This document shows positions 8,701-40,875 of a DNA stretch of 64,000 bases, piece by piece; the first letter of the stretch is position 1, and each line of letters starts with the position of its first letter. The stretch comes from Oculina patagonica (lineage: Eukaryota). The stretch covers positions 11,222,001-11,286,000 of the forward strand of contig NC_135770.1 of assembly GCF_052425735.1 (NCBI RefSeq). Reading direction: 5' to 3'. A program made the position numbers and the translations under genes. The notes beneath the pieces are model-generated. The model was not told the origin of the DNA. It worked only from the letters and a program-made list of their open reading frames with translations, and ran no database searches.

Positions 8701-9526
8701 GGCTCTCTTTCCAGATTTCCGCTCATTTCACTTTCACCTTCTTCCAACCTTTATTTCTTGCTACATAAATGATAGTTCTTTTAAGGAAAGAAGCGCTGGT
8801 TGAGTCAAAACTGGTGGCCCTGCAGGAGCAGGCCATATGAGAATCAGGAACCAGGTTGGTAAATGCAGGAGGTAAAATGCAGCAAAATTTGGATCTTGTT
8901 ACCAAGTGCTGTAAGTGAGATAAGGTAATAAGCTCGATTCGGACACCTAAAGTAGGCTTTTGATCCTTGGGAGACAAATCTAGAAGGACCTAAGACGGAG
9001 TGAAATTTCAATTCATCTTACTTTGAAACAAAAAAGAGAACCACGCAATGATGAATAAAACTTTTTGTGTTTTAATTTGCTTTTCGTGTTTTGTTTATTT
9101 GATTTAGCTTGCTAGAATAGTGAAGTATATCTGCGAACAATGTGTGCCTCCTTATCAGTAATTGTTGTAGTCAAGCTTAGTTTTTGTGTGGTCTGAATAT
9201 TTTATTTCATAAATAATGACGGAACGCTTATTACCCTTAAATTTCAAGTTGACGACAAAAAAATGCTTTGGAAGAGTATATTCGAACTTTCCAGCGTACT
9301 ACTTAAATTAATCTACAGCTAGATTTTACTTAACTATTCCCTTGAAGTCCCAAGGGTGTCAGTTCAGGATGATATTCCTCTTTGGTTATATGTCATGTTG
9401 TCTCATAAATTCTTAAAGCTTACCAGTTTAAGAAGACGTTTATGACAATCAGTATAAGGTTTTATATCGTGTAATTTAAGGTAATTCAGGAGCAAAGTCA
9501 AACTTATTCTACTTGGTTTACGTGCG

Positions 9527-11575
9527 TTTTCCCGCGCTTGATGCCGGTTCACATAGTTTCCCGCGCTTGGCACCGCTTGCATGTTTTCCTGTGCTTGGTA
9601 GCAGTTGCATGTTTTCCCGCGCTTGGCACCGCTTGCATGTTTTCCCGCGCTTGGCACCGGTTGCATGCTTTCCCGCGCCTTGTATCGGTTGCATACTGTC
9701 CCGCGCTTGGTACCGGTTTCATGTTTTCCCGCGCTTGGTACTGGTTGCATGTTTTCCCGCGCTTGTTGCCAGTTGCATGTTTTCCCGCTCTTGGTACCGG
9801 TTGCATGTTTTCCAGCGCTTGGTACCGGTTGCATGTTTTCCAGCACTTGGTACAGTTGCACGTTTTTGCGCGCTTAGTACCGGTTGCATGTTTTCCCGCT
9901 CTTGGAACCGGTTGCATGTTTTCCCGCGCTTGGTACCGGTTGCATGTTTTCCCGCGCTTGGTACCGGTTGCATGTTTTCCAGCGCTTGGTACCAGTTGTA
10001 TGTTTTCCTGCGCTTGGTACCGGTTGCATGTTTTCCCGCTCTTGGAACCGGTTGCATGTTTTCCCGCGCTTGGTACCGGTTGCATGTTTTCCAGCACTTG
10101 GTACAGTTGCACGTTTTTGCGCGCTTAGTACCGGTTGCATGTTTTCCCGCTCTTGGAACCGGTTGCATGTTTTCCCGCGCTTGGTACCGGTTGCATGTTT
10201 TCCCGCGCTTGGTACCGGTTGCATGTTTTCCAGCGCTTGGTACCAGTTGTATGTTTTCCTGCGCTTAGTACCGGTTGCATGTTTTCCCGCTCTTGGTACC
10301 GGTTGCATGTTTTCCAGCGCTTGGTACCGGTTGCATGTTTTCCAGCACTTGGTACAGTTGCACGTTTTTGCGCGCTTAGTACCGGTTGCATGTTTTCCCG
10401 CTCTTGGAACCGGTTGCATGTTTTCCCGCGCTTGGTACCGGTTGCATGTTTTCCCGCGCTTGGTACCGGTTGCATGTTTTCCAGCGCTTGGTACCAGTTG
10501 TATGTTTTCCTGCGCTTGGTACCGGTTGCATGTTTTCCCGCTCTTGGAACCGGTTGCATGTTTTCCCGCGCTTGGTACCGGTTGCATGTTTTCCCGCGCT
10601 TGGCACCGGTTGCATGTTTTCCCGCGCTTGGTACCGGTTGCATGTTTTCCAGCGCTTGGTACCGGTTGCATGTTTTCCAGCGCTTGGTACCGGTTGCATG
10701 TTTTCCAGCGCTTGGTACCGGTTGTATGTTTTCCCGCGCTTGGTACCAGTTGCATGTTTTCCCGCGCTTGGAACCGGTTGCATGTTTTCCCGCGCTTTGT
10801 ACTGGTTGCATGTTTTCCCGCGCTTGGAACCGGTTGCATGTTTTTGCGCGCTTAGTACCGGTTGCATGTTTTCCCGCTCTTGGAACCGGTTGCATGTTTT
10901 CCAGCGCTTGGTACCGGTTGCATGTTTTCCAGCACTTGGTACAGTTGCACGTTTTTGCGCGCTTAGTACCGGTTGCATGTTTTCCCGCTCTTGGAACCGG
11001 TTGCATGTTTTCCCGCTCTTGGAACCGGTTGCATGTTTTCCCGCTCTTGGAACCGGGTGCATGTTTTCCCGCGCTTGGCACCGGGTGCATGTTTTTTCTC
11101 GCACTTGGTACAGTTGCACGTTTTTGCGCGCTTAGTACCGGTTGCATGTTTTCCCGCTCTTGGAACCGGTTGCATGTTTTCCGCGCTTGGTACCGGTTGC
11201 ATGTTTTCCCGCGCTTGGTACCGGTTGCATGTTTTCCCGCGCTTGGCACCGGTTGCATGTTTTCCGCACTTGGTACAGTTGCACGTTGTTGCGCGCTTAG
11301 TACCGGTTGCATGCCGTTTCCAGCGCTTGGCACCAGTTGTATGTTTTCCCGCGTTTGGTACCGGTTGCATGTTTTCCCGCGCTTTGTACTGGTTGCATGT
11401 TTTCCCGCGCTTGGAACCGGTTGCATGTTTTCCCGCGCTTGGAACCAGTTGCATGTTTTCCCGCGCTTTGTACTGGTTGCATGTTTTCCCGCGCTTGGAA
11501 CCGGTTGCATGTTTTCCCGCGCTTGGTATCGGGTGCATGTTTACCCTCACTTGGTACCGATTGCATGTTTTCCCA
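9527..11575. repeat. 28-bp minisatellite (~73 units) with a 251-bp higher-order repeat
   Basis: Consensus TTTTCCCGCGCTTGGTACCGGTTGCATG. The variant block TACAGTTGCACGTTTTTGCGCGCTTAG recurs at 9851, 10102 and 10353. Confidence 0.97.
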
Positions 11576-12346
11576 AGTATTTTACAATGTTTTGCGCTGG
11601 TTTTATATAACTAACCGCTCTATTACAGAATCTCGTAAAAGTGTTGGGCTCGTTCTCTCGAATTCAAAAAATAAATAATTTATTATAAGAATACTCTTTG
11701 GAAATCAATAAATACAATCTTTTCAATCTTTCATAAATAATAAATAAATAAATAATTTAGTGACCTTTGGCCATTGGAGATAATTTTAAAACAGGTATAT
11801 AAATTATGTCAACTATTACAAGAAATCCTGAATAAATATAACTACAACTATGAATAACGGTTTTTTACAAACGAACATATTTCCTTAGTAAAGGTTACAA
11901 CTAGTTTAAACAATTAAAAACATATTCTTTATCTTTTATCTCTTTGAAAAAACATCTTGTAGTTTTTCTTTCGATCAAAGAAACTTATTTTTTCGAATAT
12001 CGAAAACGTTGTACAATTAAATATACTAAAATAAATTATTTTCTTGTAATTTCAATAAGATACCTAAGCGGTAATCTATATTATACCTAAATGTCTTTGG
12101 TTCTTTGTTATTCGTCTCCTGACGCTGTATGTTCCATAAAACTCAGAGTGTGGCAAAAATATCATCGTTCCACATGAAACCGTTGGAACAATACAACATC
12201 ACTCTGATCATAGCAATCTGATATTGAAAATATAAAGTCTAGCGAATATAATGTCTTTTTTGTAAACAATAAATATATGTTCTTGAATAAATAATTTAAA
12301 TAATTTCTTGAATTCCATATTAAAAAAAACCTAGAGACCACTAGCA

Positions 12347-15300
12347 TCAGTTATATTCTACGAACTGAACTGATCGCTGCCACGGAAATGTTTTTCTCGC
12401 CGATTTCGTTCTTCCATCTTTAGTTATTGCCAGATACCATAACTTGTTAAGCTTTGAACGAAATCTTGTGTATCCCTTGGGCGAAAGATCTTGAAAGAAC
12501 ACACAGCCCTGATCTGCCTTGGCTTGTTGGGACAGCTGCGGATCAATACAAGAGTTATTTATGTCAGTACTTCAGCCGCGTGTTCAGTCTTATCTCGCTT
12601 ATGCGCGTTGCCTGTTTGGGGGATATGACATGGAGTATTGGCCATGGGAAAGAAGAGTATCACATCAGTGTCTGTAACTCGTGGCGTGACAGAAACTAAA
12701 TTGTCAGTTTGACCAGAAAATTTTACAACCTCCGCGCGTTTTCGCTAACTGAAAAATTGCTTTTCTATTTTAAAAAATGCTGTAAATTTGGCGCAAAGAT
12801 TGACGTTTCAGGGGTGTCTCGGTACCCCTTCTTATCGAGGCTGTCTAAGTATTCGGCTAGACAATATGATCAGTCTGTCTCGATATCTCAGAACACGAAT
12901 CATTTAAGTACCCGGGCAGACGATATGGCATTAAGTGATTTTGTCTCACAATGACTAATCGTTGTGCCGGTTTTACAGATAAGTTAACTGACACTTCTCA
13001 CCCATCAGCCTTAGAGTACGGCGATGTATCACCATTTGTTTTTATCTTCCCCCTCATCACGTATGAATAAGTTTTTTTCTCATTTCCTCTTGCCCTTCCC
13101 GTCACCTTTCTATCCCAGCCCAATTTCTTAACTCAAATGTCATATGTTTTTAATGTTTCAGAATGAGCTATCCCGCAATGCTATATTTGTTCTGGGTTTT
13201 ATTCTCTGTGACACCTGTTTGCATAGCGCATGTTAAGGAATGTCTGTGTGTAAATCTGTGTTTTATTAATACATTTCTCTGTTCTATGTTGGCTCGTTAT
13301 ATCTTTTATTCCTCTTCATGGGAGGTTACTACATGGCCTGCCTGTCTGTCGTCTGCGGTTAAGACGTTTTTCCTCCGTACTTCATTGAGAAGTCAACGCA
13401 TACTTCAATGTTTAAAACAGACAGTCTTCCTAACGAAAACACGAACTCGCGAAATGTTCTCCCTTGCGTACATCCGTGACAAATAACGTAGTTTGTGAAT
13501 CTCATCCGGATCAAAAACATTTTCCTCGACGATTCTCGCTGTCGTAAAACCGTATAGGGCAACTTTCAGATGCGCACCCATTTCCGTGAGAAATCCCCGC
13601 CCTTGGGGTCAAAAGTGCTTCATATGCCTCGTCATTCTGTGGAAAAGTTTTGCACTGTTTCTCATTGTTTTTTTTTTCTCACGAAGCTTTTCTAAACTGA
13701 GCCAAACCACCATATAAACCGATGCCAAATTTTCTACATACCCCCAGGGCATGTATGGTTTCGCCTCAGGGGGTACGTTAAAGTTTGCAATACTTTACAA
13801 CCCCGATCAGTATAACAAACCATACCCAATACACTGATACAAGAAACCGTTTCTAGTGGAAACGGTCGACTCCAAAATATTAAAAGACATTGCCCAACTG
13901 GACTTTTTTTCATGCATTTGCCATTACAAACATCACACCCAGAGAACAGATGTTAAAGTTGTCATGATTTTATCCGAAAGTGATAAATAAACGTTTAAAA
14001 CTTACTTGCGCTACGACTGTTCCATGCTTGTCGAAACATAAACATACACTTCCATCGTATGACTTCAATATAATTTGACCCCCAGATCCCAATGATTCCA
14101 GCTTGATCTTAACTGCAAAACAAAAGATAATATCATTACAACCAAGCATAGCGAATGTGATAAACCTACGAGTGGCTGTGATACTGTCACGCTGCTGTGA
14201 AAATTGCGCTATCTGTGACACGATACATACTGTACTTAGCGCGCGCACGCGAAACGAAAACGTGATCGAGCGTTTTACGAAAGAAAAGTGTTTTTTTGTG
14301 AAACTTAAATGTTTTCCACCTTGTGTAGTGCTAATACAGTTTCTTAAAAGATAGCCGGTGTAAACTACATCGGTGATTTAAGGGCGATACAAGTATTAAA
14401 TAGATTCAAAATTCAATTCATCGAAGACAGCTTCGATATCGCACCAAAATCGCCGGTAGTTTATACATGGGACGTGATTTGTGGTCGCATTTCATAAACT
14501 CTCGCGTGAAGTCGGTACAAAATAAGTCCGTGTTCACCCATTCACCGGCCATTAAAAAAAATTAAGACCTCTTTGTTAACATTATGATCGTTAATTAAAA
14601 ACAAAAAGGTCGGCGGAAAGACAAGTCCGGTTCACAACACTCACCATTTAACTCGTGTTTGTCACCGCTGCCGTCAACTTTGCCGTTGTGAATTCGTACA
14701 AACTTCGCACTGTTTCTCGAGTACAATCTTTTGTACTTGTGGATTCCGACAACATTTTTATTGTCCATTACATCTTTCGGGTTTATACCACTGTTCTCTA
14801 GCGCTTGTATGTCCTGAAAAATGAAAGTAAACAACATTTAATTACATTGCGGACCTACCAAGGCGATCGAACGTTCGGCAGGCTTTGCGCTGTGGTTTCG
14901 GTGGCCCTATGCAGGATATATCAGTTTGCTTGCTAGTCTTTTAGTGGTCTTGCCGCCTTTGCTGTGAAACGAAGACCGCGCAGGGTAAACATTCCGTGGA
15001 CTGCGCGCGCGGCGGTAAGTAAACTTGCGTGGGAGTTTCAAGTTGTTTTTCCGCCAACGAGCTCGAGATCGACTGTCGCGTTTGACAGCCATGACAAAGT
15101 TCCCGCGAATTGCCAAGAAAAACAACAGTCTCAAATATCAGGACAGCTGGAAGATACATACAGGAACCATTGTATCTAAGATGATTATTGACCTCTGACA
15201 TAAGGATTTTATTATCTTCCAGCCGCGATTTAACTGGTAACTGAAATTCCTCGCAGGTAAATTGTTGTCCTTGCTCTATCGCCACCAGACTGATATTTTT

Positions 15301-26238: not shown

Positions 26239-29200
26239 ATGTCTCGATTAGTTTTTGTTTTCATGTGTCTTTCATCAAATGTTCTTGGAGGGACAGAAGA
26301 ACGGCGGATCAGTCTTAAGCAAGGTTTGTCTGTCTTAGTCTTCTTTCTCGTCGTTTTTCAAATAGGGAATAGCTACAGTTTTTGTGAATTACTTTTCGTC
26401 ATTTTTACTGTCGTTTCAATTTCGGCTTTGCGTGTGTGCTATTTACCCGAGGTCCTTTTTTTACCAGCACGCGGGTAAAATCAAACAAGTACCGTTCGTG
26501 TTTTTGAGGCCGCAAACATGTCTTAATTTAGATGATCGCGTAGGTAGATTTGATCCCAGGTATTAAACCAAAATAGTAGCGACGTTGACTGAAAAGACCT
26601 CCCAAACTCTACAAAAACAAGAGAATTTTTGATTATCCCGGTGTTAGTGGAAAAACCCGACAGCGACGTGTGGATAAGCTTACGTTTGATCTCACATACA
26701 GTAGACCTCATCTTATACGCCGATAACCTAGCCAATTCGACCACCTACTTATAACAGACACCTTTTCGGCCTGAAAGATGCTCAGTCTGAACCTCTTTAT
26801 ACAGCCGACTTTAATACGATCAGATTTCGATGGCTAACTCGTTGGTGGTCATTAAACGGGATTTAACTTTAATGTCAAGTGGTGGGCACGTTTGTTGTCT
26901 GTTGTGTTTAAACATGTTCTCATGGAAAAATCGCGACTACAACTGTATGTATTATCATTAACCTAATCGCCGGAAGCGGCTTAAGTCTGTCTTTGTTTTT
27001 ATAATACAGTTTACTTCTAAATCCACTTAAACGCGGCTGTTTAAACTGCCTTAGTGTCGGTAGTTGAATTCGAAAAACGCTTACTTGTTTTATTTATTGA
27101 CTTAACTCCAACACTAGCAATTTGTTTAAAGCTTGTGCAAGGATTCATTGAATTTTTCGTGTTCTATTGATGAAAAAAACGTTTTGAGTTGCTTTGGTTG
27201 GAAAACTTTCCAATCGTTTTTTTGTTGAAGAGGTAGATAAGTATTCAGTAAAATTATAAATGATCAATTATTACAATCCCTTTAAACAAATTAACCGAAA
27301 ACGATTGCGGATAAAAAGGTAGAACCCAGTAGAACACGCAATACCTCGGAGGAGAAAACTCAACTCCTTCTTATAGTCGGGGTATCGTGTTTGCCTAGTT
27401 TCTAGGCTCAATGAATCGCGCCGTCACGGATCTCTGGTGACGTGCGCGGTAAAGCGGGAGGAGGGGAGGGGAGAGGAGGGACTAGAATGTACCACACATA
27501 GGTCAAGTGATTGCAACTGATCTAGCCTGTGTAGCAGGCGTCTGTGTAGTTAATTTAGTGCGTTTAAAAGAGAGCGCGATCGCGAGAAGGTCAAGCGTTT
27601 CCCATATGCGCGCTCAAAAGTGCGGCGTCTGCTACGCAGGCTACAACTGATCATATAAATGAGTAATAATATATGATGAAATAGAATAATAAAAAAGTGG
27701 CTAAAATAACTATTCTTCTCCATTCAGATGGCCGATTGACTTCACTTCCCGACAGTGCTATTGGCCTTTGGCTTCAGCAACAAAACATGGTTAAGAGAGT
27801 ATGCCACAGGGAGACCACGAGCAGAGTGCACACAGGTGACTACTGTTTTTCTTACCACTCCAGCAAAAAAAATTGCTTGATGCATGTATTGTGTTCTAGA
27901 TAAGGGCCGAAATTCTGGGCGGGGCAAATCAACAGTTACGGAACTGAATTGTCAGAAAAAACTCTGTTTGTTGACCTTGGTTGATGAATACGTGAAATAC
28001 AGTTGAAGGAATAGAGGTGAAGGAAGATACTAGATGCTAACCTCAACGGAACATTGTACTTAACATCAAGTGTTTTGATTCATGAAAGTCAGTTAAATGA
28101 TGCTTAATATCGCTAGAGTTGTTTGTCTTCGCTTACACTGAGTGGTAAACATACAACTATTTCCCTTATTACTGAAACAGATAAGAGGCGCCACTGTCGA
28201 ACATCAATATCGGATGCTCAACGAAAAACATTTTTGATGATAGATTTCAAGTGGTTGGACTGAATAGGACTGAACGTTGTTCACTTATCAATAGCAAATG
28301 CCAGCGACTTAAAAGTTCATCAAATAACAAGTATCCATGAAAAGTTTACGAAATCTACGCGGAGAATAATAAATAACACATGCAGATGCATTTAATTTAA
28401 TTTTTAAAACAATTCAAGTGCCCAACACTTGACGGTAGCTGTTCAGACTAGGTTCTAGTTGTTTTTCTTTGATCGTGGTTGATATTGGAGTTAACACTTA
28501 AGCAGTTCTGTTAGTTAACTTAATTATTTATTCACGAATAGTTTATAGACGTTTGAAAGAGAGAGGTTGACAATTGTAATGAGGGGAACGGATGTTTTCA
28601 AGTTTTGCCTCTCGCTGTAAGTGAAGTTTATCTCTAGCAATATAAATGTATCAGGAACTCGGGAATCAAAACACTTGATCATAAGTACAATTTGGGTTTT
28701 CAAGTACTTCCGTCAATTCCCTTCATGATTAAAGAATTCACGTACTCTGTTCTAGGAATGGGACAAACATTTCAAGTGGCCAATTGTAAAGCAAGTCTTG
28801 TAGATGCCGCGAGAGAGGTGGACCACTCGCGAGGAGATAAGGTATGCATCCGGAACTTTTTACATTAAAGATGCAAAGGCTACTCTGATCGCTTTAACGT
28901 TGCTATGGCAACCAGTCTTTCCTTTGAACCAAAGCAAGCGTTGCCTTAATCCGGCCAGCTAGTTAAAAAGGTTTTTTCCGCTATCCCAGCACAGTAAGAT
29001 GTTTTAGGAACTAAACAGCAGAGATTTTAATTGAGAAAAAGACCACGCCCAAGGTAAGGCGGCGTAATAAATAATGTTCAGTTGGTTAGACCTCAGACCG
29101 AAAAAAAGGTCATGGTCTCCTGTCCAGGCTTCAGTAGAAGGGCTGCACAGAGTAAAAAATAGAGAGAATAAGAAAGCAGAGGAAAACGAAAAGGAACGGA

Positions 29201-31426
29201 GCAAGGAAAAAAATCGCAACGGTTTCGCCAAAAAATGCGCCAAAGTAAAATATTGTACATTTTTACATAAAAACTTCATCAGCATCTTACTGCAGTGCGA
29301 GAAAGTACACTGGTAGCAAAGTTTAGTTTAGAGAAATTTAGCACCGTAGCGCCAAAAAATTAATTTAACGGTTTAAAGAACGCGCTATTTGAGTAATTTC
29401 AAATTTTTATGCACCCTTTAAATTTCCAGACCCACTCAAAGGAGTCCACTCATGCATGTTGTCTTGTTATTTTTTTTTTTTCTCAGGTGGATTGTCCTGG
29501 TACCGACCATTGTATTGCTTCGCTGTCTGATATCACAACCATCAGGACTTTGACTGGTGTTCGTGACGTCACGAGTGACGTCAGTTGCTCGTGCATTTCA
29601 CGTGAAAGGCGCTGTCAGCGCATGTCCAATGAGCAAGTCTTTTTCAAGGGAACAAAGTTTGAAACGAGAGTCGATGTCGGCCAGTGTATTGGAAAGTGCC
29701 GTTCACATAGTAAGCTATGTTTTCTATAAGCACGACATTTAGAAAGCGTGAGGATTTCATTTGTTAAGCGCACAGCTCTCAGCCAATTACACTCTATGAA
29801 AACCAACCATACTTGCTCAGTCTCCTTTGAGTTTTGAAGTATTACAAAAGCCAAACAAATGAATATTTTCAAGTGAGAGAACAAACATGATATCGCTTTT
29901 ATTTAGTAGTGAACTTTAGGGTCTTGAGAACATGCGAACTTTTGATTTAAAATACAGAGAGCTTTCTTGAGCGGATTGCATGGGCCTTGTTTAACTGTTT
30001 AGACCGAATGCGAACAGCTCTCATACAATTTTAACGGCTGTATTTTGTTTCCTTTGGAAAAATTACTTGGCACACTGAACAGAGCTGTCAGTTCCATAAT
30101 TAACTTTTCCCTGTGTTTGTAGGTTCTCGTGAAGTAGAATGCAGGCCAACTTCGTTTAAGACCGTCACGGTTATGGGGCCGAATGGTGAGTAGAAAAGAC
30201 CAGAAATCCAACATCTTTTAAAAACACAGTAACCATTAGGTTGCTAACTGTAACGAATATGGGTAAGAAAAAATCTGGTCCATCCAGGCTGGAGCTCATC
30301 CCGGTTTCCGTAGTATTAAGCGACTAGGAGTATTGCTACTCCCCCCTGGATGGGATGCTAGTCCATAGCAGGGTTCCCCCCCAGCATTAAATTCACCGGC
30401 ACCCAATTATACACCTGGGTGGAGAGAGGCACTGTGAGAGTAGTCTTGTCCAGGAACACAACACGAATCCGGACGGCTCGTTCTGGAGTCCAGCGCGCTA
30501 ACCATTAGGCCACTGCGCCTTCCAAAAACAAATATAAGGGAAAAGCCCTCAAATTTACAGACGTTTTCATGGCTCAATGGTAAGAAATGCCCCACAACTT
30601 GAAGTCTTAAATGTTGTAACTCAGTGTGAATACGTAGTTTCAGGCAAGCTTTCAAGCGTTTGCTTTTAAACTTGGTATGACCACTAAATTTTGCACACCC
30701 TTTCGATTTATGGTGTATGTTTGTTTATAAGTGAATTTCTAAATGTTGACAAGTAAATAATGACGTCAGGAAGGATCGCCCTATAATTCTCGTTTTATGT
30801 TTCAGGGGCCAAGTGTGTTGAGGTGATCCAGTCTTGTGCATGTGAAAGAAAGTGCTACAGAGTCTCTCATAACGAGGCCTTTGAAGTTCAACACAACAAC
30901 GTCTCAGTGACAAAGGTGAGAGTTTAAACTATTTTTGGCATCGAATCATGTCACCTTACTCACCTTGAGGTGGTCCCAGGACGTTTGAAAGAAAACAGTG
31001 TTTAAGGTTATTTAATTTTTTGTCTTTTTTTAGATCATCGATGTTGGACGCTGCGTTGGAACTTGTTCGGGTCACGCAAAAGGAGAATGCCTTTATTGGT
31101 AAATATTTCCCTTTTTTTACTGCTGAGAGTGACTATTGTGTAATTTTTCTTTACGATATTATTACAGTGTTTAGGAAACGTGTGCATGTTGAGAATACTA
31201 TTTCGCATATATGCTGTAAATCGGATCAGTAATGCACTCCCTCGTAAGCAGTTTTCCCTCTTTTCTTTTTCACAGGATAAACAACCGAGATGGATCTGGG
31301 TCGAGAACCAGGCATTGCGCAATCCGCACCAAGACGAGGCCTAAACAATGTTACCCAGAATCCACCAGAGAGCAAACCGTGGGCGGGAAGAAAGTGACTG
31401 TAATTGACTCATGTGCGTGTCGTTAG
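26239..31426 (+). CDS. pnhd-like: Pinhead-like secreted triple cystine-knot protein A, ~296 aa, 8 exons (26239-26323, 27728-27835, 28756-28841, 29487-29709, 30123-30185, 30806-30915, 31034-31098, 31276-31426)
   Basis: All junctions are GT-AG with an open frame. Signal peptide MSRLVFVFMCLSSNVLG, then repeats ending CSC, CAC, CAC with VDVGQCIGKC, CRP...GPNGAKCVEVIQSCAC, CYRVS and IDVGRCVGTC, as recalled for Pinhead. Exons 1-3 are less certain than exons 4-8. Confidence 0.85.
30278..30522 (-). mobile_element. tRNA-derived SINE in an intron of gene A
   Basis: Reverse complement of the element at 36169-36465. Further fragments lie at ~1213-1278 and ~33198-33248. Confidence 0.8.
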
Positions 31427-32598
31427 TGGAGTCTTCGATTCACGTAATTGAACATTGATGAAAACAATCTGCTGAGAACGCTGCTAACAGAACTTTGTAA
31501 GATGGTTCAGAGGAAGACATTCAGAAAGTGGTATGGTGAACGAGACGAAGACAACAAAAATGTTGTAGAACGTTAACTGAGAGGTGGTAGATCAATGGCT
31601 AAATGCCAAGAACAGGGTTTATTAATAAATAATCAAACCTTGGATGATGGTGATAATGGAAAAAGCAAATAAAAATTCGACCATGGTTTTGCTGGATCGC
31701 GGCCAGACCTAAGGAAATTGCAAAATGAATTCAGGCAAAATGTTATCCAATCTAAACACTTGTAAGCAGCTAGCTCACTTAGAAATGGTAACTAAGCCGA
31801 CAGAAAATACAAATGAACAGAACAGAAGAACAATTCGTTTATTTTGTTGATTTTTGAAATGAGCTAGCAGAGCCATTCTATCAAGCACTGATAATTAATC
31901 CTGTTTAAGTCCTCGGGGAGATATTATCACAGCCATCAACTGTGATGAGTTTGAATCTTTCTCAGATATGAATAAGTAAGAGCAATTTATTCATTCAAGT
32001 CCGACACAAAACTGTAAAAAAAAAAAACATAGTTACACTTAGAAGACAGCCCTTGCAATGAAATGTATGTTGGGCATCAATCGTCTCTTTTCGTCAAACA
32101 TTTCCAGTCAATCATAACATGCCGTGTAATTTTGTGTAGTAGATGGTCCCTCTTTTAATGAATAAGTCAGCGAATAAGGTCTTCTAGCTTCTCTCGCTTT
32201 TGTAAAAGAATTTCAAGTTTGATATCATTAAAGGAGGATGGAACGACATAGTGTCGAGCGTGTGTATTTTTCTTTTTTTTTTCTTTACTTATCTTAACGT
32301 TTGCAAAGACCGTAATTTTGCAGGTGGCCTGACAATCAAGCGTTTGCTTAGAAAGTGCTTTTGTATGCGTTGACCATCATAATCTTGCAAAACAATTTAT
32401 ATTTTTCCCTGGTAGGCACTAATGACTACTCTTGTGCCATTAGTATTGCCTAATCCGCATAATGAAGGCTTTAATTATCAATAGAGGTGCTTACAAAGGA
32501 CTGTCAATTCAATGGATCTGAATTGTCTTTACACTCGTATGCACTCATTATCTCATCAATCATTTATTTCTCTATGCCAAACTAACCTAAGTTGGAAA

Positions 32599-34290
32599 AT
32601 GTCGATGTTTTCATTTCAAACTCAAACTCTTGGAATCTTTTCGTTGTATATTTGGTTTTTGATATGGATGAATTTTGCTGGCGTGGCTTTCATAACTGGC
32701 TGCAAGACATGCAACAGCAGAATAGAGCGAGAGAAAAGATTAATGGCCGTACAGGGACAGATCCTGGCCAAGCTTGGTATGACAAAGCCTCCAAACGAAG
32801 AAAAGATTTTTATGAATATCAGTCGTGATGTAATGCAGACTTACAGGAGCGCGGTGCAAGAAAAAGACAAGCTCTTACTCGAATCAAAGCTGTGCCGTTC
32901 ACAAGTCGACGCAGACGAAGAATACTTTGCTAAGAGAGTTGAACGATTCGTACTGGAAAAAGAGGTTGCTAGAACAGTCGTGTCAAGTAAGTATGCAAAG
33001 TATGCGTAAAGGCTAGGTCAGCGAGATTTGCTTAATTATGTTCTTAGAAATATTTTCGCGATTTTCAGAAGTTTTCAAGTCTTCAGGGCTTAAGCGAATG
33101 CTTCAAATGCATTACACTTACACTCGTTGACCGGCGTGGCTTAGACTGATTCGGAAGGAAGAATCGATCTGTATTACTAATAATGTTTTGGACGAGAAGT
33201 TCGAGCCCTGGCCGGGGTCACTGTGTTGTGTTCTCGGGCAAGACACTTCAATCTTGACATAGGGTCTCTCTTAAACCATCAAGGCTTGTTAAAAGACTTC
33301 TCTTATACATAACCCCGTTTCTACCTTCGATTGACGTGTAGCGACAATCTTTCGTTACTTGTTGCAATGCCACAGGAAATGAGGTTTTCAAGAATAAGAG
33401 TAGTTTTCTGAACATAAACAACATTTGCATAACACCAATAATAAACTCTCATAGGTTCCAAAGAAGAAAAGCTCAAGGATGTGTACTCCTTAAGATTCAA
33501 CATCACCAAACTTGCAATGGAAAGTGCACGGGTATCCTTAGCGGAGCTGCGGCTTTACCAGTCACCAAACCAACAACAGCCTCTGAGTGATGTGCGCATC
33601 GACGTTTGTGAAAACACCAGAGAAGATGACAATAACACCAAGAATGGCTGCTCCAATGCGCTTGATTCTAAGTGGAGTTTATCCAGCGAGGAGAAGTGGA
33701 TATCATTTGATGTCACTTCACTGGTTCAGAGGTGGCTGGATGATTCTACGTTGAACCACGGTCTCTCAGTGACCGTAACAAGTTCTGAATCTGCAAGCAA
33801 AGATGTGGATGTTTCCCCGATTTATCTCGGTGGACCAGTACCTAAAAAGGCCCACAACGAAGACGAAGAATCTTTGCCAAATATCCTAGTGTGGTTTGTG
33901 CCTCGCGAACGAGTGCACTCGTCGAGACGAAGAAACAGGCGGTCCCTGGATTCGAGTTATTGCAAGAAGCGACCCAAAGAAAAGCGTTGCTGTCTTCGCT
34001 CGCTGTACATCGACTTTGAGAAGGATTTGCGCTGGAAATGGCTTCACGCGCCGAAAGGTTTCTACGCAAACTATTGTGCTGGACAGTGTCCTTTAATGTG
34101 GGGAGTCGAGAAGCAGAACCACCACACTTCCATTATGGCTTTGTACAACAGAATCAACCCTAATGCCCCAGGGGACCCCTGCTGCGTACCAAAATCTTAC
34201 GAGCCCCTGGTTGTCCTGTACTTCAAAGATGGTGAACCTAAAATTGATGAGCTGTCCAACATGGCGGTCAGCGAGTGCACTTGTCTGTGA
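32599..34290 (+). CDS. TGFB-like: TGF-beta sensu stricto ligand precursor, ~407 aa, 2 exons (32599-32986, 33455-34290); start codon uncertain
   Basis: Signal peptide; LAP-like GCKTC...KRLMAVQGQILAKLGM...YFAK; furin site RRRNRR; 9-Cys mature domain SLDSSYC...CCLRSLYIDFEKDLRWKWLHAPKGFYANYCAGQCP...PCCVP...LSNMAVSECTC, closely matching TGFB1-3. Confidence 0.96.
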
Positions 34291-35045
34291 ACCGGCATAG
34301 TGGCTCTTAACAAGCTTGGGTTGGTCTTTCGGCGGAAGACATCTTTACGGCAAAAAACAGGAGCTCAAACATGGATTGAAATTTGTATGTATATGGGGTA
34401 AAACTGAGTTCCCCTTGTTATACAACATGTATCGCTAATCAGAGTCTTCGAGTCTTTTTTGTCATCTCAACGTTTTTTTTATACCTTTTTTGGGTTGGCT
34501 TAACGTTAAAGAATGGTCAAGAATGATGTCAAGTTTTATCAACGTTTTAGTGAATTAGAACTTACACTCCACGCAATATTTAGCAATGTAATATCACTGA
34601 GTTTTTACATTTCGTTTTACTCGGACTTTGTTGTCCTTGGGTGCATGAGGCCAGTTAGAAAATAAGATAGTAGGACTGCAGATAAAGGAGTGTGTTTCCA
34701 AACATGTGTATCAAAATAAAGCAAAAACTTACCTTGAATCAGTGTTTCTTGTTTTTAGCTAATGGCCCTTAGTACAAAACAACTTCTCAACAAACCTGTA
34801 GTCGAAAAAACCTACAAGGCCTCGACAAGCTCTCTAGCCGGGGAACTTGGATGAACGCGCCACTCCGACATATTCCCGCGCTTTTTTGAAAAATGAACAG
34901 GCGAATGTGCCATTTTGGATTTTCCCGCGCTTTTTGTAGCATGACGGTAACCGAATAAATTCGTCGGTTGGTTCGATTGGTGAACATAAATTGTAGCACA
35001 TCGTGCGCGTAAAAACTCCTACTGTAATATCTTGGCTGATGTTTT

Positions 35046-35290
35046 CAGGGGCGGATCCAGGATTTCAAAAGGGGGGGGGGGGGGTGGATGGCAGACCATT
35101 AGGGCCTAACCCTAACCCTAAGTGGCGGCAGACGGCGAATCGTGGCGTAACAACAACCAGACATGAGCGAGAGCTAATTTTTCTTTCTTTATTTATTTTC
35201 TATTTCAAATAAAGCGACATTTCCAATTTTTTTTACTGAAAAATGGGGGGTGGATATCCACCCTATCCACCCCCCCTGTATCCGCCCCTG
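35046..35290. mobile_element. hAT-like MITE with a 5-bp TSD
   Basis: TIRs CAGGGGCGGATCCAGG / CCTGTATCCGCCCCTG, GTTTT on both sides, and an internal CCTAACCCTAACCCTAA. Confidence 0.75.
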
Positions 35291-35588
35291 GTTTTATATT
35301 TAACTAATAACGTGTGGTTAATACGAACCAGAAAATAAACCGCTTCTCAATCAATGGAACAAGCTCATCTTGTGTTCAAGTGCTTTTATTGCAAGTGTTC
35401 ATGTAGTTACAATACCATTTGTCTGACATTTGGATGGTGCAAGTGCGTGAAAACATAGCTTGATAACAAGTTTACTACAAAAAATAAGCACACATTATTT
35501 TTTCGAAAAGACGACGGCTCTTGAGAAGGGACCTAGGAGAGGAGGAGAGGGGCGGATCCCCACTTTTTGTTGAATGAGTGCAAGACTT

Positions 35589-35752
35589 GTAGGTAAGTAG
35601 GTAGGTAGGTAGGTAGGTAGGTAGGTAGGTTGGTAGCTAGGCCAAGGGGTAGCCAGCCAGGCAGGCAGGCAGACAGGTAGGTAGGTAGGTAGGTAGGTAG
35701 ATAGCTAGGCACGCAGGTAGGTAGGTAGGTAGGTAGGTAGGTAGGTAGGTAA
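35589..35752. repeat. (GTAG)n microsatellite, interrupted
   Basis: Read directly; lies in the presumed 3' UTR of gene B. Confidence 0.95.
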
Positions 35753-35884
35753 GCAATTTAGCAAATTTAGTGAAATAGAGCAATTAGACTACGCCGTGGA
35801 ATCAGACATAACCGTTCAATACAATGGAGTTGAAAAATAATGAACTAAAAGATTCAGTTGAAGACGAATTGTACGTTCTGCACA

Positions 35885-38800
35885 TTAGTTACATTTGCAA
35901 CGTTTTATGACATTAACAGTCTTGGGAGCACCATGCTCAGCAAACAGAACTTGTGCCCCAAAGGACCTGGAACGGCATTTTCCTCCAGTCTCTCCGGGTG
36001 AGGACGACAGCATGCAAACTTTGGACGGCACGTCAGAGCCTGGGTACCAGAGAGGGTTATCTACCCTGTAAAGAATAACCAGTTTTAAAATGCGTAGAGT
36101 CAAAGGGTGAACGCTAATTCAAGTATACCATTTATATAAAATTGCATGTTGGTCACAACAGGAGGAATGGGAGACGCGGTGGCCTAAATGGTTAGTGTTC
36201 CAGACTCTGGATGGAGTGGTCCGGGTTCGAGCCCTGGCCGGGGTCAGTGCGTTGTGTTCTTGGGCAAGAAACTTTACTCTCATAGTGCCTCTCTCCACAC
36301 AGGTGTATAAATGAGTTCCAGCGAATTTTTATGCTGGGGGCAACCCTGCGATGGACTAGCATCCCATCCAGTGGGCGTAGAAATACTCCTAGTCGCTTAA
36401 TACTAAGAAAACCGGGATAAGCTCCGGCTTTATGGGCCACTTGGCTCCACGCAGACTTTACCTACCTTACAACAGAAGGACTTGCTCAGATACCTGATTA
36501 TATGTATTGTGTTTATGTTAAGGAGAAATTAATTTGATCTTGATAACTCTTATTCTTACCAATGAAGACAGCGCCCCTTCTTTCTTTTGGAACATTCTCC
36601 AACGCAGCGCCCGACATCAATGACCTACAGAAACGCGAATGTTATTAATATTCGAACCCTTTTCTTCTAGGCTCATCAATTAGAGTTGTACGTATTTATT
36701 AACGAAAGTAGCTACTTATGACAGCTATATCTTTTTTCTGGAATTTGTCTTTAAAGGCCCTTAACTCGACCAAACTATTTTAATTAAAGATAGGCGTCCT
36801 TTAAAAAATGCATGATTTATAATCTCCGAGTCACTAAGAGGACTGAGTCCCTTCATCGATCTGACGATTTTGGATCCTATTCCGACACTATGTCTTTTAG
36901 CCTGGGTGTGTTGAGCTGGATATTAGGATATTGAAAGAATTTTATCAAGGATGAGTTAATTAGCTCATGTAGTTTTGGCCGCCTTTATTAAATGAGACGT
37001 CAAACCTTGGTGATTTACTCGGTTAATATGTATCGCAAGAGAAGACAATAAGTCATGGACTTCTGCTTCTACTAATAAGAAGTTAGTTCTTATGGGAGAC
37101 TTCGGCTGAGCTTAGCCTAGCTTCTTTTCTCTGCTTCTCTTCTACTAAGGATTCAGTTATTCCCTGTCTTTTCAACTCTATTTTGGTTTTGTTTTTTTCA
37201 CGATTATATCCGATGCTATCAACGGTATATTTTATCAGTCGAAGAAAAGTTCACGCTGTTGTATATGCTATAAAGATCATGTTGTAGTATTTTTGTAAGA
37301 CAGTAGGGAGGAAAGAAGATCGAGCATCCATTCATATAGGGGCTTAAAATATCCTTGTTCAGGTATTTTTTACGCTGAACTCACCTGCTCCACTGTTTTA
37401 TTGGCACCGATCTTCTCGTCAAATACCGTGATACTGTATAACTGATGGAATGACACGCGGCGACAGTTTCGCGCGCAGCCGCACTTCAAGACTTTTTCCA
37501 CACAATGAGCACCTATGGAATCAGTCATGGGGTAAAGAATTAACGGTTGGAAAAAGCTACTGAGAAGTAAATCCGAGTTTTTAATGGGGATGTTCCTGGG
37601 CCTAATAGTTAGTGCGTCAGATTTGAAATTTAGAAAACCGTGTCATTGTCTTCGTATTAATATGTCCCTCGTTGATGAAAATATTTTTATCTCACAGTAC
37701 CTCTGTCCATCCAGGGGAATCGATCAGGAAACCGGACAAACACTGGGGTCATGCATAGTGGTGTTTACCTGCTATCTCATCGAGATAGAGCCACTATTGA
37801 TAATCATAGTGACTGTGAATGCTTTAGAAACCGGTATAAATTTTAGTTTTGGAACATAGTTAGTAGAGGAACGACCAGACGATACTGTAGACAAAGGTTA
37901 AAGAAACTTACCGTTCGGACCTTTCACGTTAACAGTTTTACTGGCAATGGGCAGACATGTCTTCTTTCCTGAACAAACAAATATCGCTGCAACTGTCAAC
38001 CTTGAATTTTGCTTATAAATTAGCTTCGCCTCAAAAATTATAATTAAGGGGACATACTCTTACGGAATGCTTTTACCTCGAATTCGACTCCAATGTTTTA
38101 ACAAGAAAATTGCAGATTATTATAAGTAATTAAGTTATAGAGGATGAGGTTATTTCTCTTCTTAGTTGGCATAAAAGACAAAAAATAGCATTTGCTGACT
38201 GGACAATTTTTCGATATGTTCGCGAAAACTGGAACTTTATTTTCTGTTAAGTCGTCAAACCGGGCGAATTTGAACGAGGACGAACGCTAAGGGTGAGCTC
38301 TACGGTAGACCTGCCAGCAGGCTCTCTTTTGCTTTAAAATCCGTGAGGATGAACGCGAAAATAACTATAATTACTAGCGCGATAAATGAGCGGCGAAGCC
38401 GCGAGTTTAGCTTGGTTGCTATTCTCGTGTTCATCCTCACAGATTTTAGAGCAACAGAGAGACTGTTCGCAGTATAACTCTGCGAGGTCGCTCACTCTCA
38501 TCTACGGTAGACCTGCCAGCAGGCTCTCTTTTGCTTTAAAATCCGTGAGGATGAACGCGAAAATAACTATAATTACGAGCGCGATAAATGAGCGGCGAAG
38601 CCGCGAGTTTAGCTTGGTTGCTATTCTCGTGTTCATCCTCACAGATTTTAGAGCAACAGAGAGACTGTTCGCAGTATAACTCTGCGAGGTCGCTCACTCT
38701 CGCGCGCTATAAACCATAGTATGTATAAACTAAAAAAAAAAAACTGAAAAGAAACGTCTGTGGACGGACTAGCTAGCTCCTGTATGGAGAATGAACAAAA

Positions 38801-40875
38801 CTTTGGGAATTCTATAAATTTACTGCTACACTTGTTGGGGGTCATGTAAGGTGTCATTAAAAAATCCTTCATTATATTTTCGAGCGCAGTTCATTTTACA
38901 TTACCTTTATTGCATGAGCCAACGCACTGACCGACATCAACAGTTTTCTCATATGTGGTTCCCCAGTGGAATACCCGGATGTTTGTCTGTCTGTGACAGC
39001 GAGGGCGAGGATCAAGACAGTGGCAGCTAAGAGCGCTGGTGACCTGCTTTAGACCTTCCAGTAGAGCAATCTCTTCAACTAAACTTTCATTTGCCACGCA
39101 CATTCGAGGGACATTACAAGGCTGAGAAAGAACGTAAAATAAAATCCTCAATTCGTTTAGGTGGAGACTTTTCTCTAAGCACACTAAATTGTTTTGTCAT
39201 ACGCAAGAATGAGGCCGTCCAAGCGATGTACAATCAACTGAACTGATCAGTAGGACAAAAAAAATTGAACGATGCGTTACAAGATTACTGTTTTGTTTCG
39301 TCTAGCTGTTACAAATAGCCTTATGTTACAAACAGCCTTATCAGTCGGGACGAAGAGGATTACGCAACAAAAAACGCTCTCTTACACCGTGTAATAAATT
39401 CTGCTTGTCAAATTGCCAATCCAGCAGTGCTCATATAAATTACCCGCTATTCTCTTCGAATTTAGCTTAGAGCGGGTTATTCTGTTTGAAAATGCTTTAT
39501 TTTTTCAGCGTAATGCTTTCTGCTGAACGGCCACTGAAATGGCTGAATGGTCAATGCGGGAGTGGCCTTTTCTGCTCGAAGCCGCTATGTCGGCAGAATT
39601 GATCCAAGCCCCATATCAGCATATTTTCATGGCTCTTCTATTTTGTAAAATACATCTGACGTACATTCAGCTAATAAACCAGGTTGTGGAAAAAAAGATT
39701 GTGGGGTAAATCACTGATTTAGTTTTTACCATTCCGCGGCGTTGATCTGGCTTTTCTGTTGTTTGGACAGAAGTGATACGACAATGGTTAACATTTCTGT
39801 GAACGGTCTGCAAATCTATCCCTGAAAAAGAAAATTTAACCATCAACAGAGTGGGAAATCGTCACTAAGATTATAAAGTCAATGGACATCAGAACCATAA
39901 CTGAGATGCTAAAGAAAAAACGCTTAGATAAACGAAAGGAAGATAGATGGATGCACGAAGAGATGGATACGTACTAGATTCGATAATAAATTACAAAACA
40001 CTTTGTAGCGCAAACATCTATTTCACCAGCTTTCTATGACAAAATTTTGAGTGTTCTTCACGGCTTATTTTATAGATTTTTTGTTCGAATAAGTTAACTT
40101 AGATTGTCATTAATTAAAAACTGCCGGACAAAGCGTCATTTCAGTTCATCGTTTTCAAGGCGATATTGAGCCCTGGACAGCTTGGTATTTGATTATTGAA
40201 GGTAGCTTTGAAAACTGAGATATCAATTTAGCTGCAAGAAGTGAAATACTAATATTTGTAAATTACCTTGTCCAAAATGTTCTTCTTGACTCACCAAACC
40301 ACAAATACTTGTTGTTCCTTTGCCATGAGACCCGCCATGAATGATCTGACGGCTGAAGTAATCTTAAAAAAAAGATATGAAATGAAAAAAAATGTTGTTG
40401 TATTTGTCTTTTTATGTTGCCGAATAATATAATTTTACTTTGTATTCCGTACCTTGGCTAACCGGTAAAACGTGCATGAAAGCGGACTAAATCGGAACTG
40501 AGCAATTGAACATATATCAGCGCGTAATCAATTTACTGTGTTTGAGCTCCGATTTTTCTAAGAGAACTCTTTAGACTAATTGCATAATTCAAACTTGTTT
40601 GCCGAAAATGAAAAACCGACCTGATATCGTAGAGATATATAACATATTTTGTTGTGCTAGAATAAAGATACGAAAAAAAAGTGATAAAGCAAACTAAAAA
40701 TAAATTGCGGTAAACACACACCTTTCTCCCTGCCTTTTTCCTTGGACTCTTCAGTCAGTTCGCTCACTGGAAACTGTGAGCTTAATCGACCATCTACCAG
40801 GAAGACCACTGTTGCAAGAATTAGAAACAAAAACAATATATTTTTCGCATAAGTCACGGTTATCTTATTTCCCAT
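35885..40875 (-). CDS. pnhd-like: Pinhead-like secreted triple cystine-knot protein B, ~329 aa, 8 exons (40875-40722, 40362-40267, 39821-39730, 39121-38905, 37968-37912, 37512-37385, 36624-36560, 36065-35885)
   Basis: GT-AG, open frame, hydrophobic signal peptide. LLEGLKQVTSALSCHC...CHRQ...YEKTVDVGQCVGSC...CLP...GPNGAHCVEKVLKCGC...IDVGRCVGEC...VIKRCKCN*. Intron phases 1,1,0,1,1,0,2 are identical to gene A. Confidence 0.88.
36169..36465 (+). mobile_element. Near full-length tRNA-derived SINE
   Basis: A-box (TGGCCTAAATGG) and B-box (GGTTCGAGCCC) head, a body shared with other copies in the window, and a CTTTACCT tail. Confidence 0.85.
38299..38700. repeat. Near-perfect 202-bp tandem duplication containing a MITE-like unit
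   Basis: TCTACGGTAGACCTGCCAGCAGG... starts at both 38299 and 38501. Confidence 0.92.

Follow-up and report, generated by a model that had tools for sequence, protein, structure and literature searches.

In the coral Oculina patagonica, a precursor gene of the TGF-beta sensu stricto type is flanked by two genes, A and B, that very probably belong to the Pinhead family and form with it a conserved cassette (family membership and conservation being taken as one joint claim). The window, i.e., the whole stretch of DNA that was analyzed, comprises 64,000 nucleotides of contig NC_135770.1. Gene A and the TGF-beta gene are on the plus strand, and gene B is convergent on the minus strand. As a whole, the locus is best explained as a conserved cassette in which A and/or B tune the neighboring TGF-beta, a reading to which we assign a probability of roughly 0.55. 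The features of the locus are as follows:

12350..14840, minus strand: FGF gene upstream of gene A, Pfam FGF on two exon pieces
26239..31426, plus strand: gene A (Pinhead-like, ACROYT_G040235), 296 aa, 8 exons, ATG at 26239, stop at 31426
26239-26323, 27728-27835, 28756-28841, 29487-29709, 30123-30185, 30806-30915, 31034-31098, 31276-31426, plus strand: gene A exons, GT-AG borders
26239..26323, plus strand: gene A exon 1, start codon and hydrophobic N-terminus, sequence MSRLVFVFMCLSSNVLGG
29487..29709, plus strand: gene A exon 4, carrying the last part of knot 1 (C..CxC) and the first part of knot 2 (VDVGQCIGKC)
31427..32598, 1,172 bp: spacer from the gene A stop to the TGF-beta ATG, both genes on the same strand
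32599..34290, plus strand: TGF-beta sensu stricto-type precursor gene, 407 aa, 2 exons
32599-32986, 33455-34290, plus strand: TGF-beta exons, coding sequence
33952..34290, plus strand: mature ligand domain, 9 cysteines, furin-type site RRRNRR just before it
34291..35884, 1,594 bp: spacer between the convergent TGF-beta and gene B stops, contains repeats
40875..35885, minus strand: gene B (Pinhead-like, ACROYT_G040237), 329 aa, 8 exons, ATG at 40875, stop at 35885
40875-40722, 40362-40267, 39821-39730, 39121-38905, minus strand: gene B exons 1-4
37968-37912, 37512-37385, 36624-36560, 36065-35885, minus strand: gene B exons 5-8

The coordinates and orientations given in a preliminary description of the window all held: gene A ends about 1.2 kb upstream of the TGF-beta gene, and gene B converges on it about 1.6 kb downstream. 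It was also borne out that neither flanking gene is visible as a whole in the track of open reading frames, since each is split by GT-AG introns into 8 short exons (63 nt in the case of gene A exon 5) and a single frame cannot show it. The spliced genes were exact copies of the annotated ACROYT_G040235 and ACROYT_G040237, both labeled 'hypothetical protein', and they are paralogs with a common exon structure. The N-terminus of gene A was read from hydrophobicity only as a probable signal peptide, in a stretch of low pLDDT.

Gene A, the TGF-beta gene, and gene B are all transcribed and spliced in transcriptome contigs. The contigs were from four runs catalogued as RNA ('RNA?'), the depths of which cannot show co-expression or exclusive expression. 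Exon joints were found in gene A at 30916>31035 (exons 6-7) and 31097>31275 (exons 7-8), in the TGF-beta gene at 32986>33455 (GT..AG, three runs), and in gene B at 36064>36559 (exons 7-8, two runs). The upstream spacer holds a TGF-beta 5' UTR acceptor near 32570, where the loose end of an RNA contig points to an untranslated exon upstream of the TGF-beta start. Approximately 200 bp before this start (32391-32598) were conserved with Pocillopora, the blastn match beginning at 32391; no other conserved non-coding blocks were found in the two spacers when Oculina and Pocillopora were compared by blastn. The repeats in the downstream spacer give high word depth, and loose ends of RNA contigs were located there at 34938-35333. 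The two pieces of the FGF gene had Pfam values of 2.8e-10 and 1.1e-3, the second being under Pfam's cut-off. This gene is a conserved neighbor, found in the same place in Pocillopora, rather than an established part of the cassette.

The ligand encoded by the middle gene was classified by HMMER scores against PDB chains, and its sequence is of the TGF-beta sensu stricto type rather than the ADMP or BMP type, in agreement with the preliminary description, which had taken it for a true TGF-beta. Pfam recognized TGFb_propeptide and TGF_beta in the gene. The mature domain matched TGFB1-3 with 137 bits (~1e-39), against ~1e-19 at best for any other PDB ligand (74 bits for an activin/BMP2 chimera; 70 bits or less for natural activin, GDF8/11, and BMPs). 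Exon 1, where the prodomain starts, matched only TGFB1/2/3 proproteins in PDB (3.6e-7 to 1e-3), and the Actinia ortholog is named 'TGF-beta-3 proprotein-like' by NCBI. As in vertebrate TGF-beta1/2/3, the mature motifs CC(L/V)R.LYIDF and W(K/N)W(I/L)H.PKG are present along with the nine cysteines and the furin-type site, and the prodomain opens like the TGFB1-3 latency peptide, with the CKT cysteine and an alpha-1 helix matching KRKRIEAIRGQILSKL. Unlike in the TGFB1 prodomain, both 'bowtie' cysteines align with serines in the coral (CSC vs TSSES; HMMER), and no RGD integrin motif was seen in the aligned arm region of the coral prodomain (HMMER alignment). These differences make latency of the LTBP or GARP type uncertain. 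The bowtie cysteines and the RGD are not universal among vertebrate TGF-betas, TGFB2 being without RGD.

Genes A and B encode secreted-type proteins of approximately 300 aa with three tandem cystine-knot growth-factor-like modules each; 22 of the 296 residues in A and 21 of the 329 in B are cysteines. The AlphaFold2 model of the gene A protein is confident (pLDDT 87, pTM 0.74) and predicts three tandem hairpin-finger cystine-knot modules, which match artemin, TGF-beta3, BMP6, and hCG-beta singly at a TM of ~0.5. The triple cystine knot claimed earlier thus stands as regards the three modules and needs amendment for knot 1, which is degenerate in all cnidarian members: two canonical cysteines have been lost, and the CxGxC motif of this knot was not found upstream of gene A exon 4. 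The pattern C..CxGxC..C..CxC is kept in modules 2 and 3. The cysteine loss sets the cnidarian proteins apart from bilaterian Pinhead, and their binding properties may differ as a consequence. An origin of the Pinhead modules from a TGF-beta mature domain by tandem duplication was considered and rejected at the sequence level. The Pinhead family profile matched GDF11/GDF8 weakly (E 0.05), and profile-profile comparison of the family with the TGF-beta mature domain gave nothing (probability 0.4%).

That the flanking genes are Pinhead genes, as first suggested in the preliminary description, was upheld by BLASTP, by a tree, and by an exon profile. The gene A protein matched a Ciona protein at 1e-27 (37% identity over 180 aa) and a fish protein at 3e-21 (28% over 244 aa), and the gene B protein matched the Ciona protein at 9e-23; both database proteins are labeled 'uncharacterized' and are called Pinhead here because an admp-type gene follows each of them directly downstream. 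The alignment with these chordate admp-adjacent proteins is collinear and spans the full length, including all three modules. The search profile was built from gene A exon 4, the most conserved exon, and the corresponding gene B exon, and it matched 129 proteins in an exhaustive HMM search of 1.8 billion proteins. The matches included full-length relatives of ~300 aa in cnidarians, sponges, and bilaterians (Ciona, Styela, amphioxus, fish, lizard, echinoderms, a brachiopod, nemerteans, and arthropods), the lizard and fish proteins at ~1e-8 against the 1.8 billion. Exon borders of the coral genes fall at the same profile positions (~161, 180, 222, 243) as those of the amphioxus and Lingula genes. 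A cluster named 'Pinhead' in a protein atlas was matched with a score of 0.85, and no Pfam family was matched by single exons or by whole Pinhead-type proteins.

In the tree, A and B formed one clade (support 96/93) within which each holds Actinia and corals; the A/B duplication took place before sea anemones and stony corals diverged. The position immediately upstream of admp is not found in the coral, where the downstream neighbor is of the TGF-beta sensu stricto type. Adjacency to admp characterizes where pinhead lies in bilaterian genomes and not the protein itself, so this was not counted against membership. A third coral paralog has no ligand within 10 kb. Members from Nematostella, octocorals, or medusozoans were not named in word-indexed searches, by which absence is not shown. 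The 'Pinhead' of a sponge paper was 'one-eyed pinhead', an unrelated gene.

The adjacency of gene A, TGF-beta, and gene B exceeds chance. If there are some 10 TGF-beta-family ligand genes among about 25,000 genes, which we take as rough figures, a given neighbor is a ligand in ~4 of 10,000 cases. The linkage in other anthozoans, proposed as a check in the preliminary description, was examined, and the layout recurs in the anemone Actinia, with A (+), TGF-beta (+), and B (-), and in the coral Pocillopora, where the three genes are laid out as in Oculina. A partial cassette was found on two more cnidarian contigs, and in Desmophyllum, locus tag 020359 is bracketed by 020358 and 020360. Scleractinia and Actiniaria thus share the conserved linkage, and in the 10 kb upstream of gene A nothing alike was found between Actinia and Oculina. 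Of the refuting outcomes named in the preliminary description, neither a lack of Pinhead hits nor missing linkage in other anthozoans was observed. The Ciona, fish, and Lingula relatives are each followed on a common strand, after 1.6-2.2 kb, by a BMP-class ADMP-type ligand, and no ligand was found within 10 kb of the Pinhead-like genes in three sponges (Oscarella, Sycon, Ephydatia). The family thus extends beyond Bilateria, to cnidarians and sponges, and its presence in sponges makes it older than the hexacoral and bilaterian lineages. The partner ligands, TGF-beta and ADMP, come from two different ancient classes, which leaves descent from one ancestral gene pair hypothetical.

The Ciona Pinhead and Admp genes show mutual transcriptional interference in cis, and action of Xenopus Pinhead through FGF receptors has been reported. 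The pinhead-Admp gene pair is said to have been treated, at least in part, by Kenwrick in 2004 and Imai in 2012. Pinhead and admp have been described in the order, strand, and spacing seen at the Ciona, fish, and Lingula loci (Yan et al. 2019, PMC6989304), and Pinhead binds Admp in Xenopus, binding being also reported in Ciona (Itoh 2021, PMC8188501). Zebrafish Pinhead has been described as a BMP-like ligand itself (PMC6989304), so the mode of action of the family is disputed even in vertebrates. The range given for Pinhead in the accessible literature is 'from arthropods to vertebrates', with a role as the ADMP partner in dorsoventral patterning. No paper describing Pinhead outside Bilateria was found, nor any mention of flanking Pinhead-like genes in the accessible literature on cnidarian TGF-beta, which accords with the earlier remark that no description of Pinhead flanking a TGF-beta gene was known.

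The coral genes resemble bilaterian Pinhead in length (~300 aa), probable signal peptide, three tandem cystine knots, lack of a Pfam domain, and common intron positions, and the locus resembles the Pinhead-Admp pair in its geometry, with a TGF-beta-superfamily ligand gene following a Pinhead gene on the same strand at a distance of 1-2 kb. It differs from that pair in that the neighbor is a TGF-beta sensu stricto-type ligand and not a BMP-class ADMP, in that there are two Pinhead paralogs, one per side and the second convergent, and in that the host is not a bilaterian.

It is very improbable, and largely refuted already, that the likeness of A and B to Pinhead is superficial and that the two are generic proteins with multiple cystine knots (CTCK or DAN-like). 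Such a reading could draw on the missing Pfam model, on fold matches that have weak E-values and point to the cystine-knot growth-factor fold in general, and on the atlas score of only 0.85; it is opposed by the full-length collinear alignment with admp-adjacent chordate proteins (1e-21 to 1e-27) and by the intron positions common to coral, amphioxus, and Lingula. The family profile also had no significant match to PDB by sequence (best E 0.047), which marks the family as separate and the resemblance as more than a generic CTCK one. The DAN family, sclerostin, and norrin share the cystine-knot fold and an extracellular ligand-binding mode and appeared as weaker neighbors in the atlas and Foldseek, but they are single-knot proteins, whereas the Pinhead family has three knots per chain, and no significant sequence similarity to them was found. 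If A and B are Pinhead-family proteins, their position beside TGF-beta may still be without functional meaning, which we consider possible although rather unlikely. Short spacers and slow anthozoan rearrangement would then keep the three genes together, and A and B would act on other ligands (e.g., BMP or ADMP-related) or through FGF receptors. The conserved non-coding sequence in the spacers, being only ~200 bp of promoter or 5' UTR, is consistent with this, and the FGF gene, also a conserved neighbor in two corals, suggests that local gene order is kept more broadly. Moreover, the three sponge genes and the third coral paralog, without a ligand within 10 kb, indicate that family members can function without an adjacent one. 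However, bilaterians repeat the geometry with another ligand, the Pinhead gene being 1-2 kb upstream on a common strand, which chance would hardly be expected to produce if position did not matter, and the cassette has been kept between anemone and corals, yet the 10 kb upstream of gene A share nothing between Actinia and Oculina.

A different account concerns origin only and is compatible with a functional reading: the cnidarian-bilaterian ancestor may have had a larger cluster of Pinhead with ADMP-type and TGF-beta-type ligands, of which bilaterians retained Pinhead-Admp and hexacorals Pinhead-TGF-beta. The equal order, strand, and spacing of Pinhead and the downstream ligand in hexacorals and bilaterians would fit, as would the greater age of the family, which is present in sponges. 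Nevertheless, in none of the genomes examined is a Pinhead gene accompanied by both ligands, sponges have no linkage within 10 kb, the Pinhead tree lacks resolution in its deep branches, and the coral ADMP-related gene was not located; we judge such a cluster to be unlikely.

In the preferred reading, that of a conserved cassette tuning TGF-beta, A and B are candidate regulators of coral TGF-beta because they flank its gene. By analogy with Pinhead-Admp in Ciona and Xenopus, A and/or B may bind mature or latent coral TGF-beta extracellularly, and this binding would tune its availability. A functional link of A or B with TGF-beta at the protein level is proposed tentatively, at somewhat below even odds; the partner ligand is BMP-like in chordates and TGF-beta-like in the coral, so an interaction known from chordates may not extend to the coral proteins. 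The tight spacing (1.2 kb from the gene A stop to the TGF-beta start) might have been maintained by regulatory DNA that the genes have in common or compete for, and cis-regulatory coupling of the cassette genes, again suggested by analogy, is rather doubtful. It is possible, though rather unlikely, that such pairing follows a general rule dating at least from the cnidarian-bilaterian ancestor, by which a TGF-beta-superfamily ligand has a dedicated secreted three-knot partner, Pinhead, encoded next to it and coupled to it in cis, with hexacoral A and B as TGF-beta regulators.

In anemones, the cnidarian TGF-beta pathway has been linked with immunity and with tolerance of symbionts; in Aiptasia, this tolerance has been associated with TGF-beta sensu stricto (Detournay et al. 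2012, cited in PMC5446238). The Aiptasia ligand, from a related hexacoral, is probably of the orthologous class. In hexacorals, the Pinhead arrangement has a tight head-to-tail order, the neighboring ligand belonging to the other major class, and has been kept since the split of anemones and stony corals. The locus frames the comparative question of whether Pinhead-ligand adjacency is a conserved regulatory principle or a coincidence, and it puts forward A and B as definite, testable candidates for regulating cnidarian TGF-beta outside the cell. If Pinhead-ligand pairing is indeed an ancient and general rule, the two hexacoral Pinhead paralogs would be new extracellular regulators of the TGF-beta linked to the tolerance of algal symbionts.

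In the window, two Pinhead-like paralogues, genes A and B, flank a TGF-beta gene, and the three form a cassette with A and TGF-beta on the plus strand and B on the minus strand. The gene models were as follows.

26239-26323, 27728-27835, 28756-28841, 29487-29709, 30123-30185, 30806-30915, 31034-31098, 31276-31426, plus strand: gene A, eight exons
32599-32986, 33455-34290, plus strand: coding exons of the TGF-beta gene, 407-aa precursor
40875-40722, 40362-40267, 39821-39730, 39121-38905, 37968-37912, 37512-37385, 36624-36560, 36065-35885, minus strand: gene B, eight exons

The spliced A and B were exactly identical to ACROYT_G040235 (296 aa) and ACROYT_G040237 (329 aa), respectively, both annotated in the stony coral Oculina patagonica as 'hypothetical protein', and the exon borders were GT-AG. 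Exon 5 of gene A is 63 nt long. The preliminary description had placed A about 1.2 kb upstream of the TGF-beta gene in the same orientation and a paralogue converging on it about 1.6 kb downstream, and measurement bore out both distances: the TGF-beta ATG lies 1,172 bp downstream of the A stop on the same strand, and B and TGF-beta are convergent, with 1,594 bp from stop to stop.

For transcription, contigs of four public runs (catalogued as RNA, marked 'RNA?') were placed on 30780-36700, with 95-99% identity to the window. The TGF-beta intron was removed (32986>33455, GT..AG) in three of the four runs (word depth 30-295), the last two A introns (30916>31035 and 31097>31275) in two runs (depth 7-21), and the last B intron (36064>36559, minus strand) also in two (depth 5-29); neither co-expression nor exclusive expression of A, TGF-beta, and B can be read from these contig depths. 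One RNA contig broke off from the window at 32570, ahead of the TGF-beta ATG, which indicates an untranslated upstream exon, and the start was therefore set at the ATG at 32599 and not at 32512. Related copies of a short repeat were present in an A intron (30100-30500) and a B intron (36120-36520). The B-intron copy reached a contig word depth of about 1,500-8,200 in all four runs and is therefore a high-copy, transcribed element. A second high-depth repeat was located inside the TGF-beta intron (~33156-33353).

The ligand matched the Pfam models TGFb_propeptide and TGF_beta. When its mature domain was compared with all PDB chains, TGF-beta1, 2, and 3 scored 134-137 bits (about 1e-39), an activin/BMP2 chimera 74 bits, and natural activin, GDF8/11, and BMPs 70 bits or less. 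The mature domain has nine cysteines and is preceded by an RRRNRR cleavage site. For exon 1, TGF-beta1-3 proproteins were the sole PDB matches, and the CKT-motif cysteine and the alpha-1 helix aligned. The HMMER alignment with TGFB1 placed serines of the coral ligand opposite the bowtie cysteines, and no RGD motif was seen in the coral ligand in it. A homology search retrieved close cnidarian sequences only, and the Actinia orthologue is named 'transforming growth factor beta-3 proprotein-like' at NCBI. The ligand is accordingly classed, from score gaps and diagnostic features, as TGF-beta sensu stricto and not ADMP, as had been proposed.

No Pfam model matched A or B. A profile made from exon 4 of both genes was searched exhaustively against 1.84 billion representative proteins, and 129 proteins were retrieved. 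Full-length matches of ~300 aa came from cnidarians (corals and the anemone Actinia), sponges (Oscarella, Sycon), chordates (tunicates, amphioxus, the fish Arapaima, the lizard Pogona), and other bilaterians (echinoderms, Lingula, nemerteans, and many arthropods); a further sponge member, from Ephydatia, was found by a separate search. All these proteins were named 'uncharacterized' or alike, and the chordate members were identified here by gene position. In Ciona intestinalis, the gene of the 299-aa protein P0162 is followed after 1.6 kb, in the same orientation, by a TGF-beta-family gene of 545 aa. In Arapaima, 2.2 kb separate the gene of P0041 from the 359-aa ligand gene downstream of it; the corresponding gaps were 1.9 kb in Lingula and 8.3 kb in amphioxus. 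In a PDB comparison of the Ciona and Lingula neighbour ligands, the best matches were BMP-class (BMP2, 3, 6, 7; 1e-32 to 1e-40), whereas TGF-beta1-3 reached only 1e-12 to 1e-15. The Ciona, Lingula, and fish ligands each have 7 cysteines and a common ADMP-like motif, YVDFE.(I/M)GWS.WI..P.GYNAYHC. These positions agree with Yan et al. 2019 (PMC6989304; compare PMC8188501), who place pinhead directly in front of admp, 'ranging from arthropods to vertebrates'.

In BLASTP, A matched the Ciona protein at 1e-27 (37% identity, 180 aa) and the fish protein at 3e-21 (28% identity, 244 aa), and B matched the Ciona protein at 9e-23. Exon borders of the coral, amphioxus, and Lingula genes fell at equal profile positions. 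A protein-atlas search with exon 4 gave as the top entry a chordate cluster named 'Pinhead' (score 0.85), which is a lead only. On the position-identified chordate relatives, BLASTP, and common exon borders, A and B are assigned to the Pinhead family, in line with the identity first suggested for them.

An AlphaFold2 model of A, built on a 33-sequence family alignment, was confident (mean pLDDT 87.4, pTM 0.74) and predicted a disordered N-terminus followed by three tandem pairs of long beta-hairpins. Single modules were matched by Foldseek to cystine-knot growth factors (artemin, neurturin-type ligands, TGF-beta3, BMP6, GDF11, activin, hCG-beta, VEGF-B) with TM by target of about 0.45-0.53 and weak whole-chain E-values. 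The triple cystine knot of the preliminary description thus held for the three tandem modules, but not for the full cysteine set: modules 2 and 3 retain C...CxGxC...C...CxC, while in the family alignments module 1 of all cnidarian members lacks one of the paired cysteines (CC) at the N-terminus as well as the final CxxxC cysteine, both retained in the bilaterian and Oscarella proteins. Their joint loss suggests that the two pair as one disulfide bond. Derivation of the Pinhead modules from the TGF-beta mature domain, with adjacency left by tandem duplication, was also considered; the family profile matched weakly (GDF11/GDF8, E 0.05), profile-profile comparison gave no match, and the idea was dropped.

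The same layout was found in other anthozoans. In Actinia tenebrosa, a Pinhead-like gene (+, 316 aa) is followed after 1.0 kb by the start of a TGF-beta gene (+, 392 aa), on which a second Pinhead-like gene (-, 250 aa) converges. In Pocillopora damicornis, the A orthologue (+, 296 aa) precedes the start of a TGF-beta gene (+, 404 aa) by 1.8 kb, and the exons of the converging gene (-, 258 aa) fit the Pinhead profile. Two cnidarian contigs from ENA assemblies carried partial cassettes: in one, B converges on TGF-beta at a distance of about 0.5 kb, and in the other, A lies upstream of TGF-beta. In Desmophyllum pertusum, the Pinhead-like locus tags 020358 and 020360 are separated by one gene, which we infer to be TGF-beta. 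Conserved non-coding DNA in the Oculina and Pocillopora spacers was limited to about 200 bp right before the TGF-beta start.

In a maximum-likelihood tree of 35 Pinhead-family members, A-type and B-type proteins formed one clade (support 96/93), within which each type comprised Actinia and scleractinians (99/96 and 100/95, respectively); deeper branches were without resolution. Because both types contain Actinia and scleractinians, the duplication predates the Actiniaria-Scleractinia split, which implies the same age for the cassette. A third, very divergent coral paralogue, the Stylophora protein P0172 (263 aa), had a long, unplaced branch.

Other features of the window were noted as follows.

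1382-2125, minus strand: intact 247-aa ORF, protein kinase catalytic domain-like by eye only (HRDLATKN, ADMGVAK); perhaps a kinase gene with a single exon, or else one large exon
9400-11700, ORFs of 150-490 aa on both strands: long tandem repeat array with units such as GKHATGTKRGKTCNRYQARENMQPVPSA; probably minisatellite DNA rather than a gene
12350-14840, minus strand: FGF gene, on the opposite strand to A and about 11 kb upstream of it; 12350-12571 and 14598-14837 match Pfam FGF, 13973-14377 is FGF-like by eye only

An FGF gene occupies the equivalent place in Pocillopora (locus L002, 1-805).

The literature search turned up no account of Pinhead in cnidarians or sponges and no description of the A/TGF-beta/B cassette; a recent review on BMP signalling in cnidarians names Pinhead solely as a chordate ADMP regulator (PMC11226491), and 'pinhead' in a sponge paper was the unrelated 'one-eyed pinhead'. 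Compared with the known Pinhead-ligand pair, the coral cassette has another ligand class, a doubled Pinhead, and a non-bilaterian host. The superfamily has two major classes, one with the ADMP-type and the other with the TGF-beta-type ligands (PMC3169577); the bilaterian and coral partner genes are therefore not simple orthologues. An ancestral cluster with several ligands may have undergone differential loss, or a ligand may have been recruited separately beside a Pinhead gene. Within 10 kb on either side of the Pinhead-like genes of Oscarella lobularis, Sycon ciliatum, and Ephydatia muelleri, and of the Stylophora P0172 gene, no TGF-beta mature domain was found, with the same outcome from called genes and from a six-frame HMM scan. 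Adjacency of Pinhead and TGF-beta by chance is unlikely, as a given neighbour would be one of about ten ligand genes with a probability of ~4 in 10,000, estimated from rough gene numbers. In Oscarella lobularis (locus L003, 10001-16065), the Pinhead-like gene is followed after 0.9 kb, in the same orientation, by a gene for an immunoglobulin-domain receptor tyrosine kinase of 743 aa; the link of Xenopus Pinhead to FGF-receptor signalling mentioned in PMC8188501 makes this neighbour curious, and it may be coincidental.

In Xenopus, Pinhead binds Admp and reduces Smad1 signalling (PMC8188501). For Ciona, the same source, citing Imai 2012, also mentions Pinhead-Admp binding and repression of the two genes by each other in cis. 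For zebrafish, Pinhead has instead been presented as a BMP-like ligand (PMC6989304). By analogy with Xenopus and Ciona, A and B would most likely bind the neighbouring TGF-beta extracellularly, and the short head-to-tail spacing of A and TGF-beta would be maintained by shared regulation.
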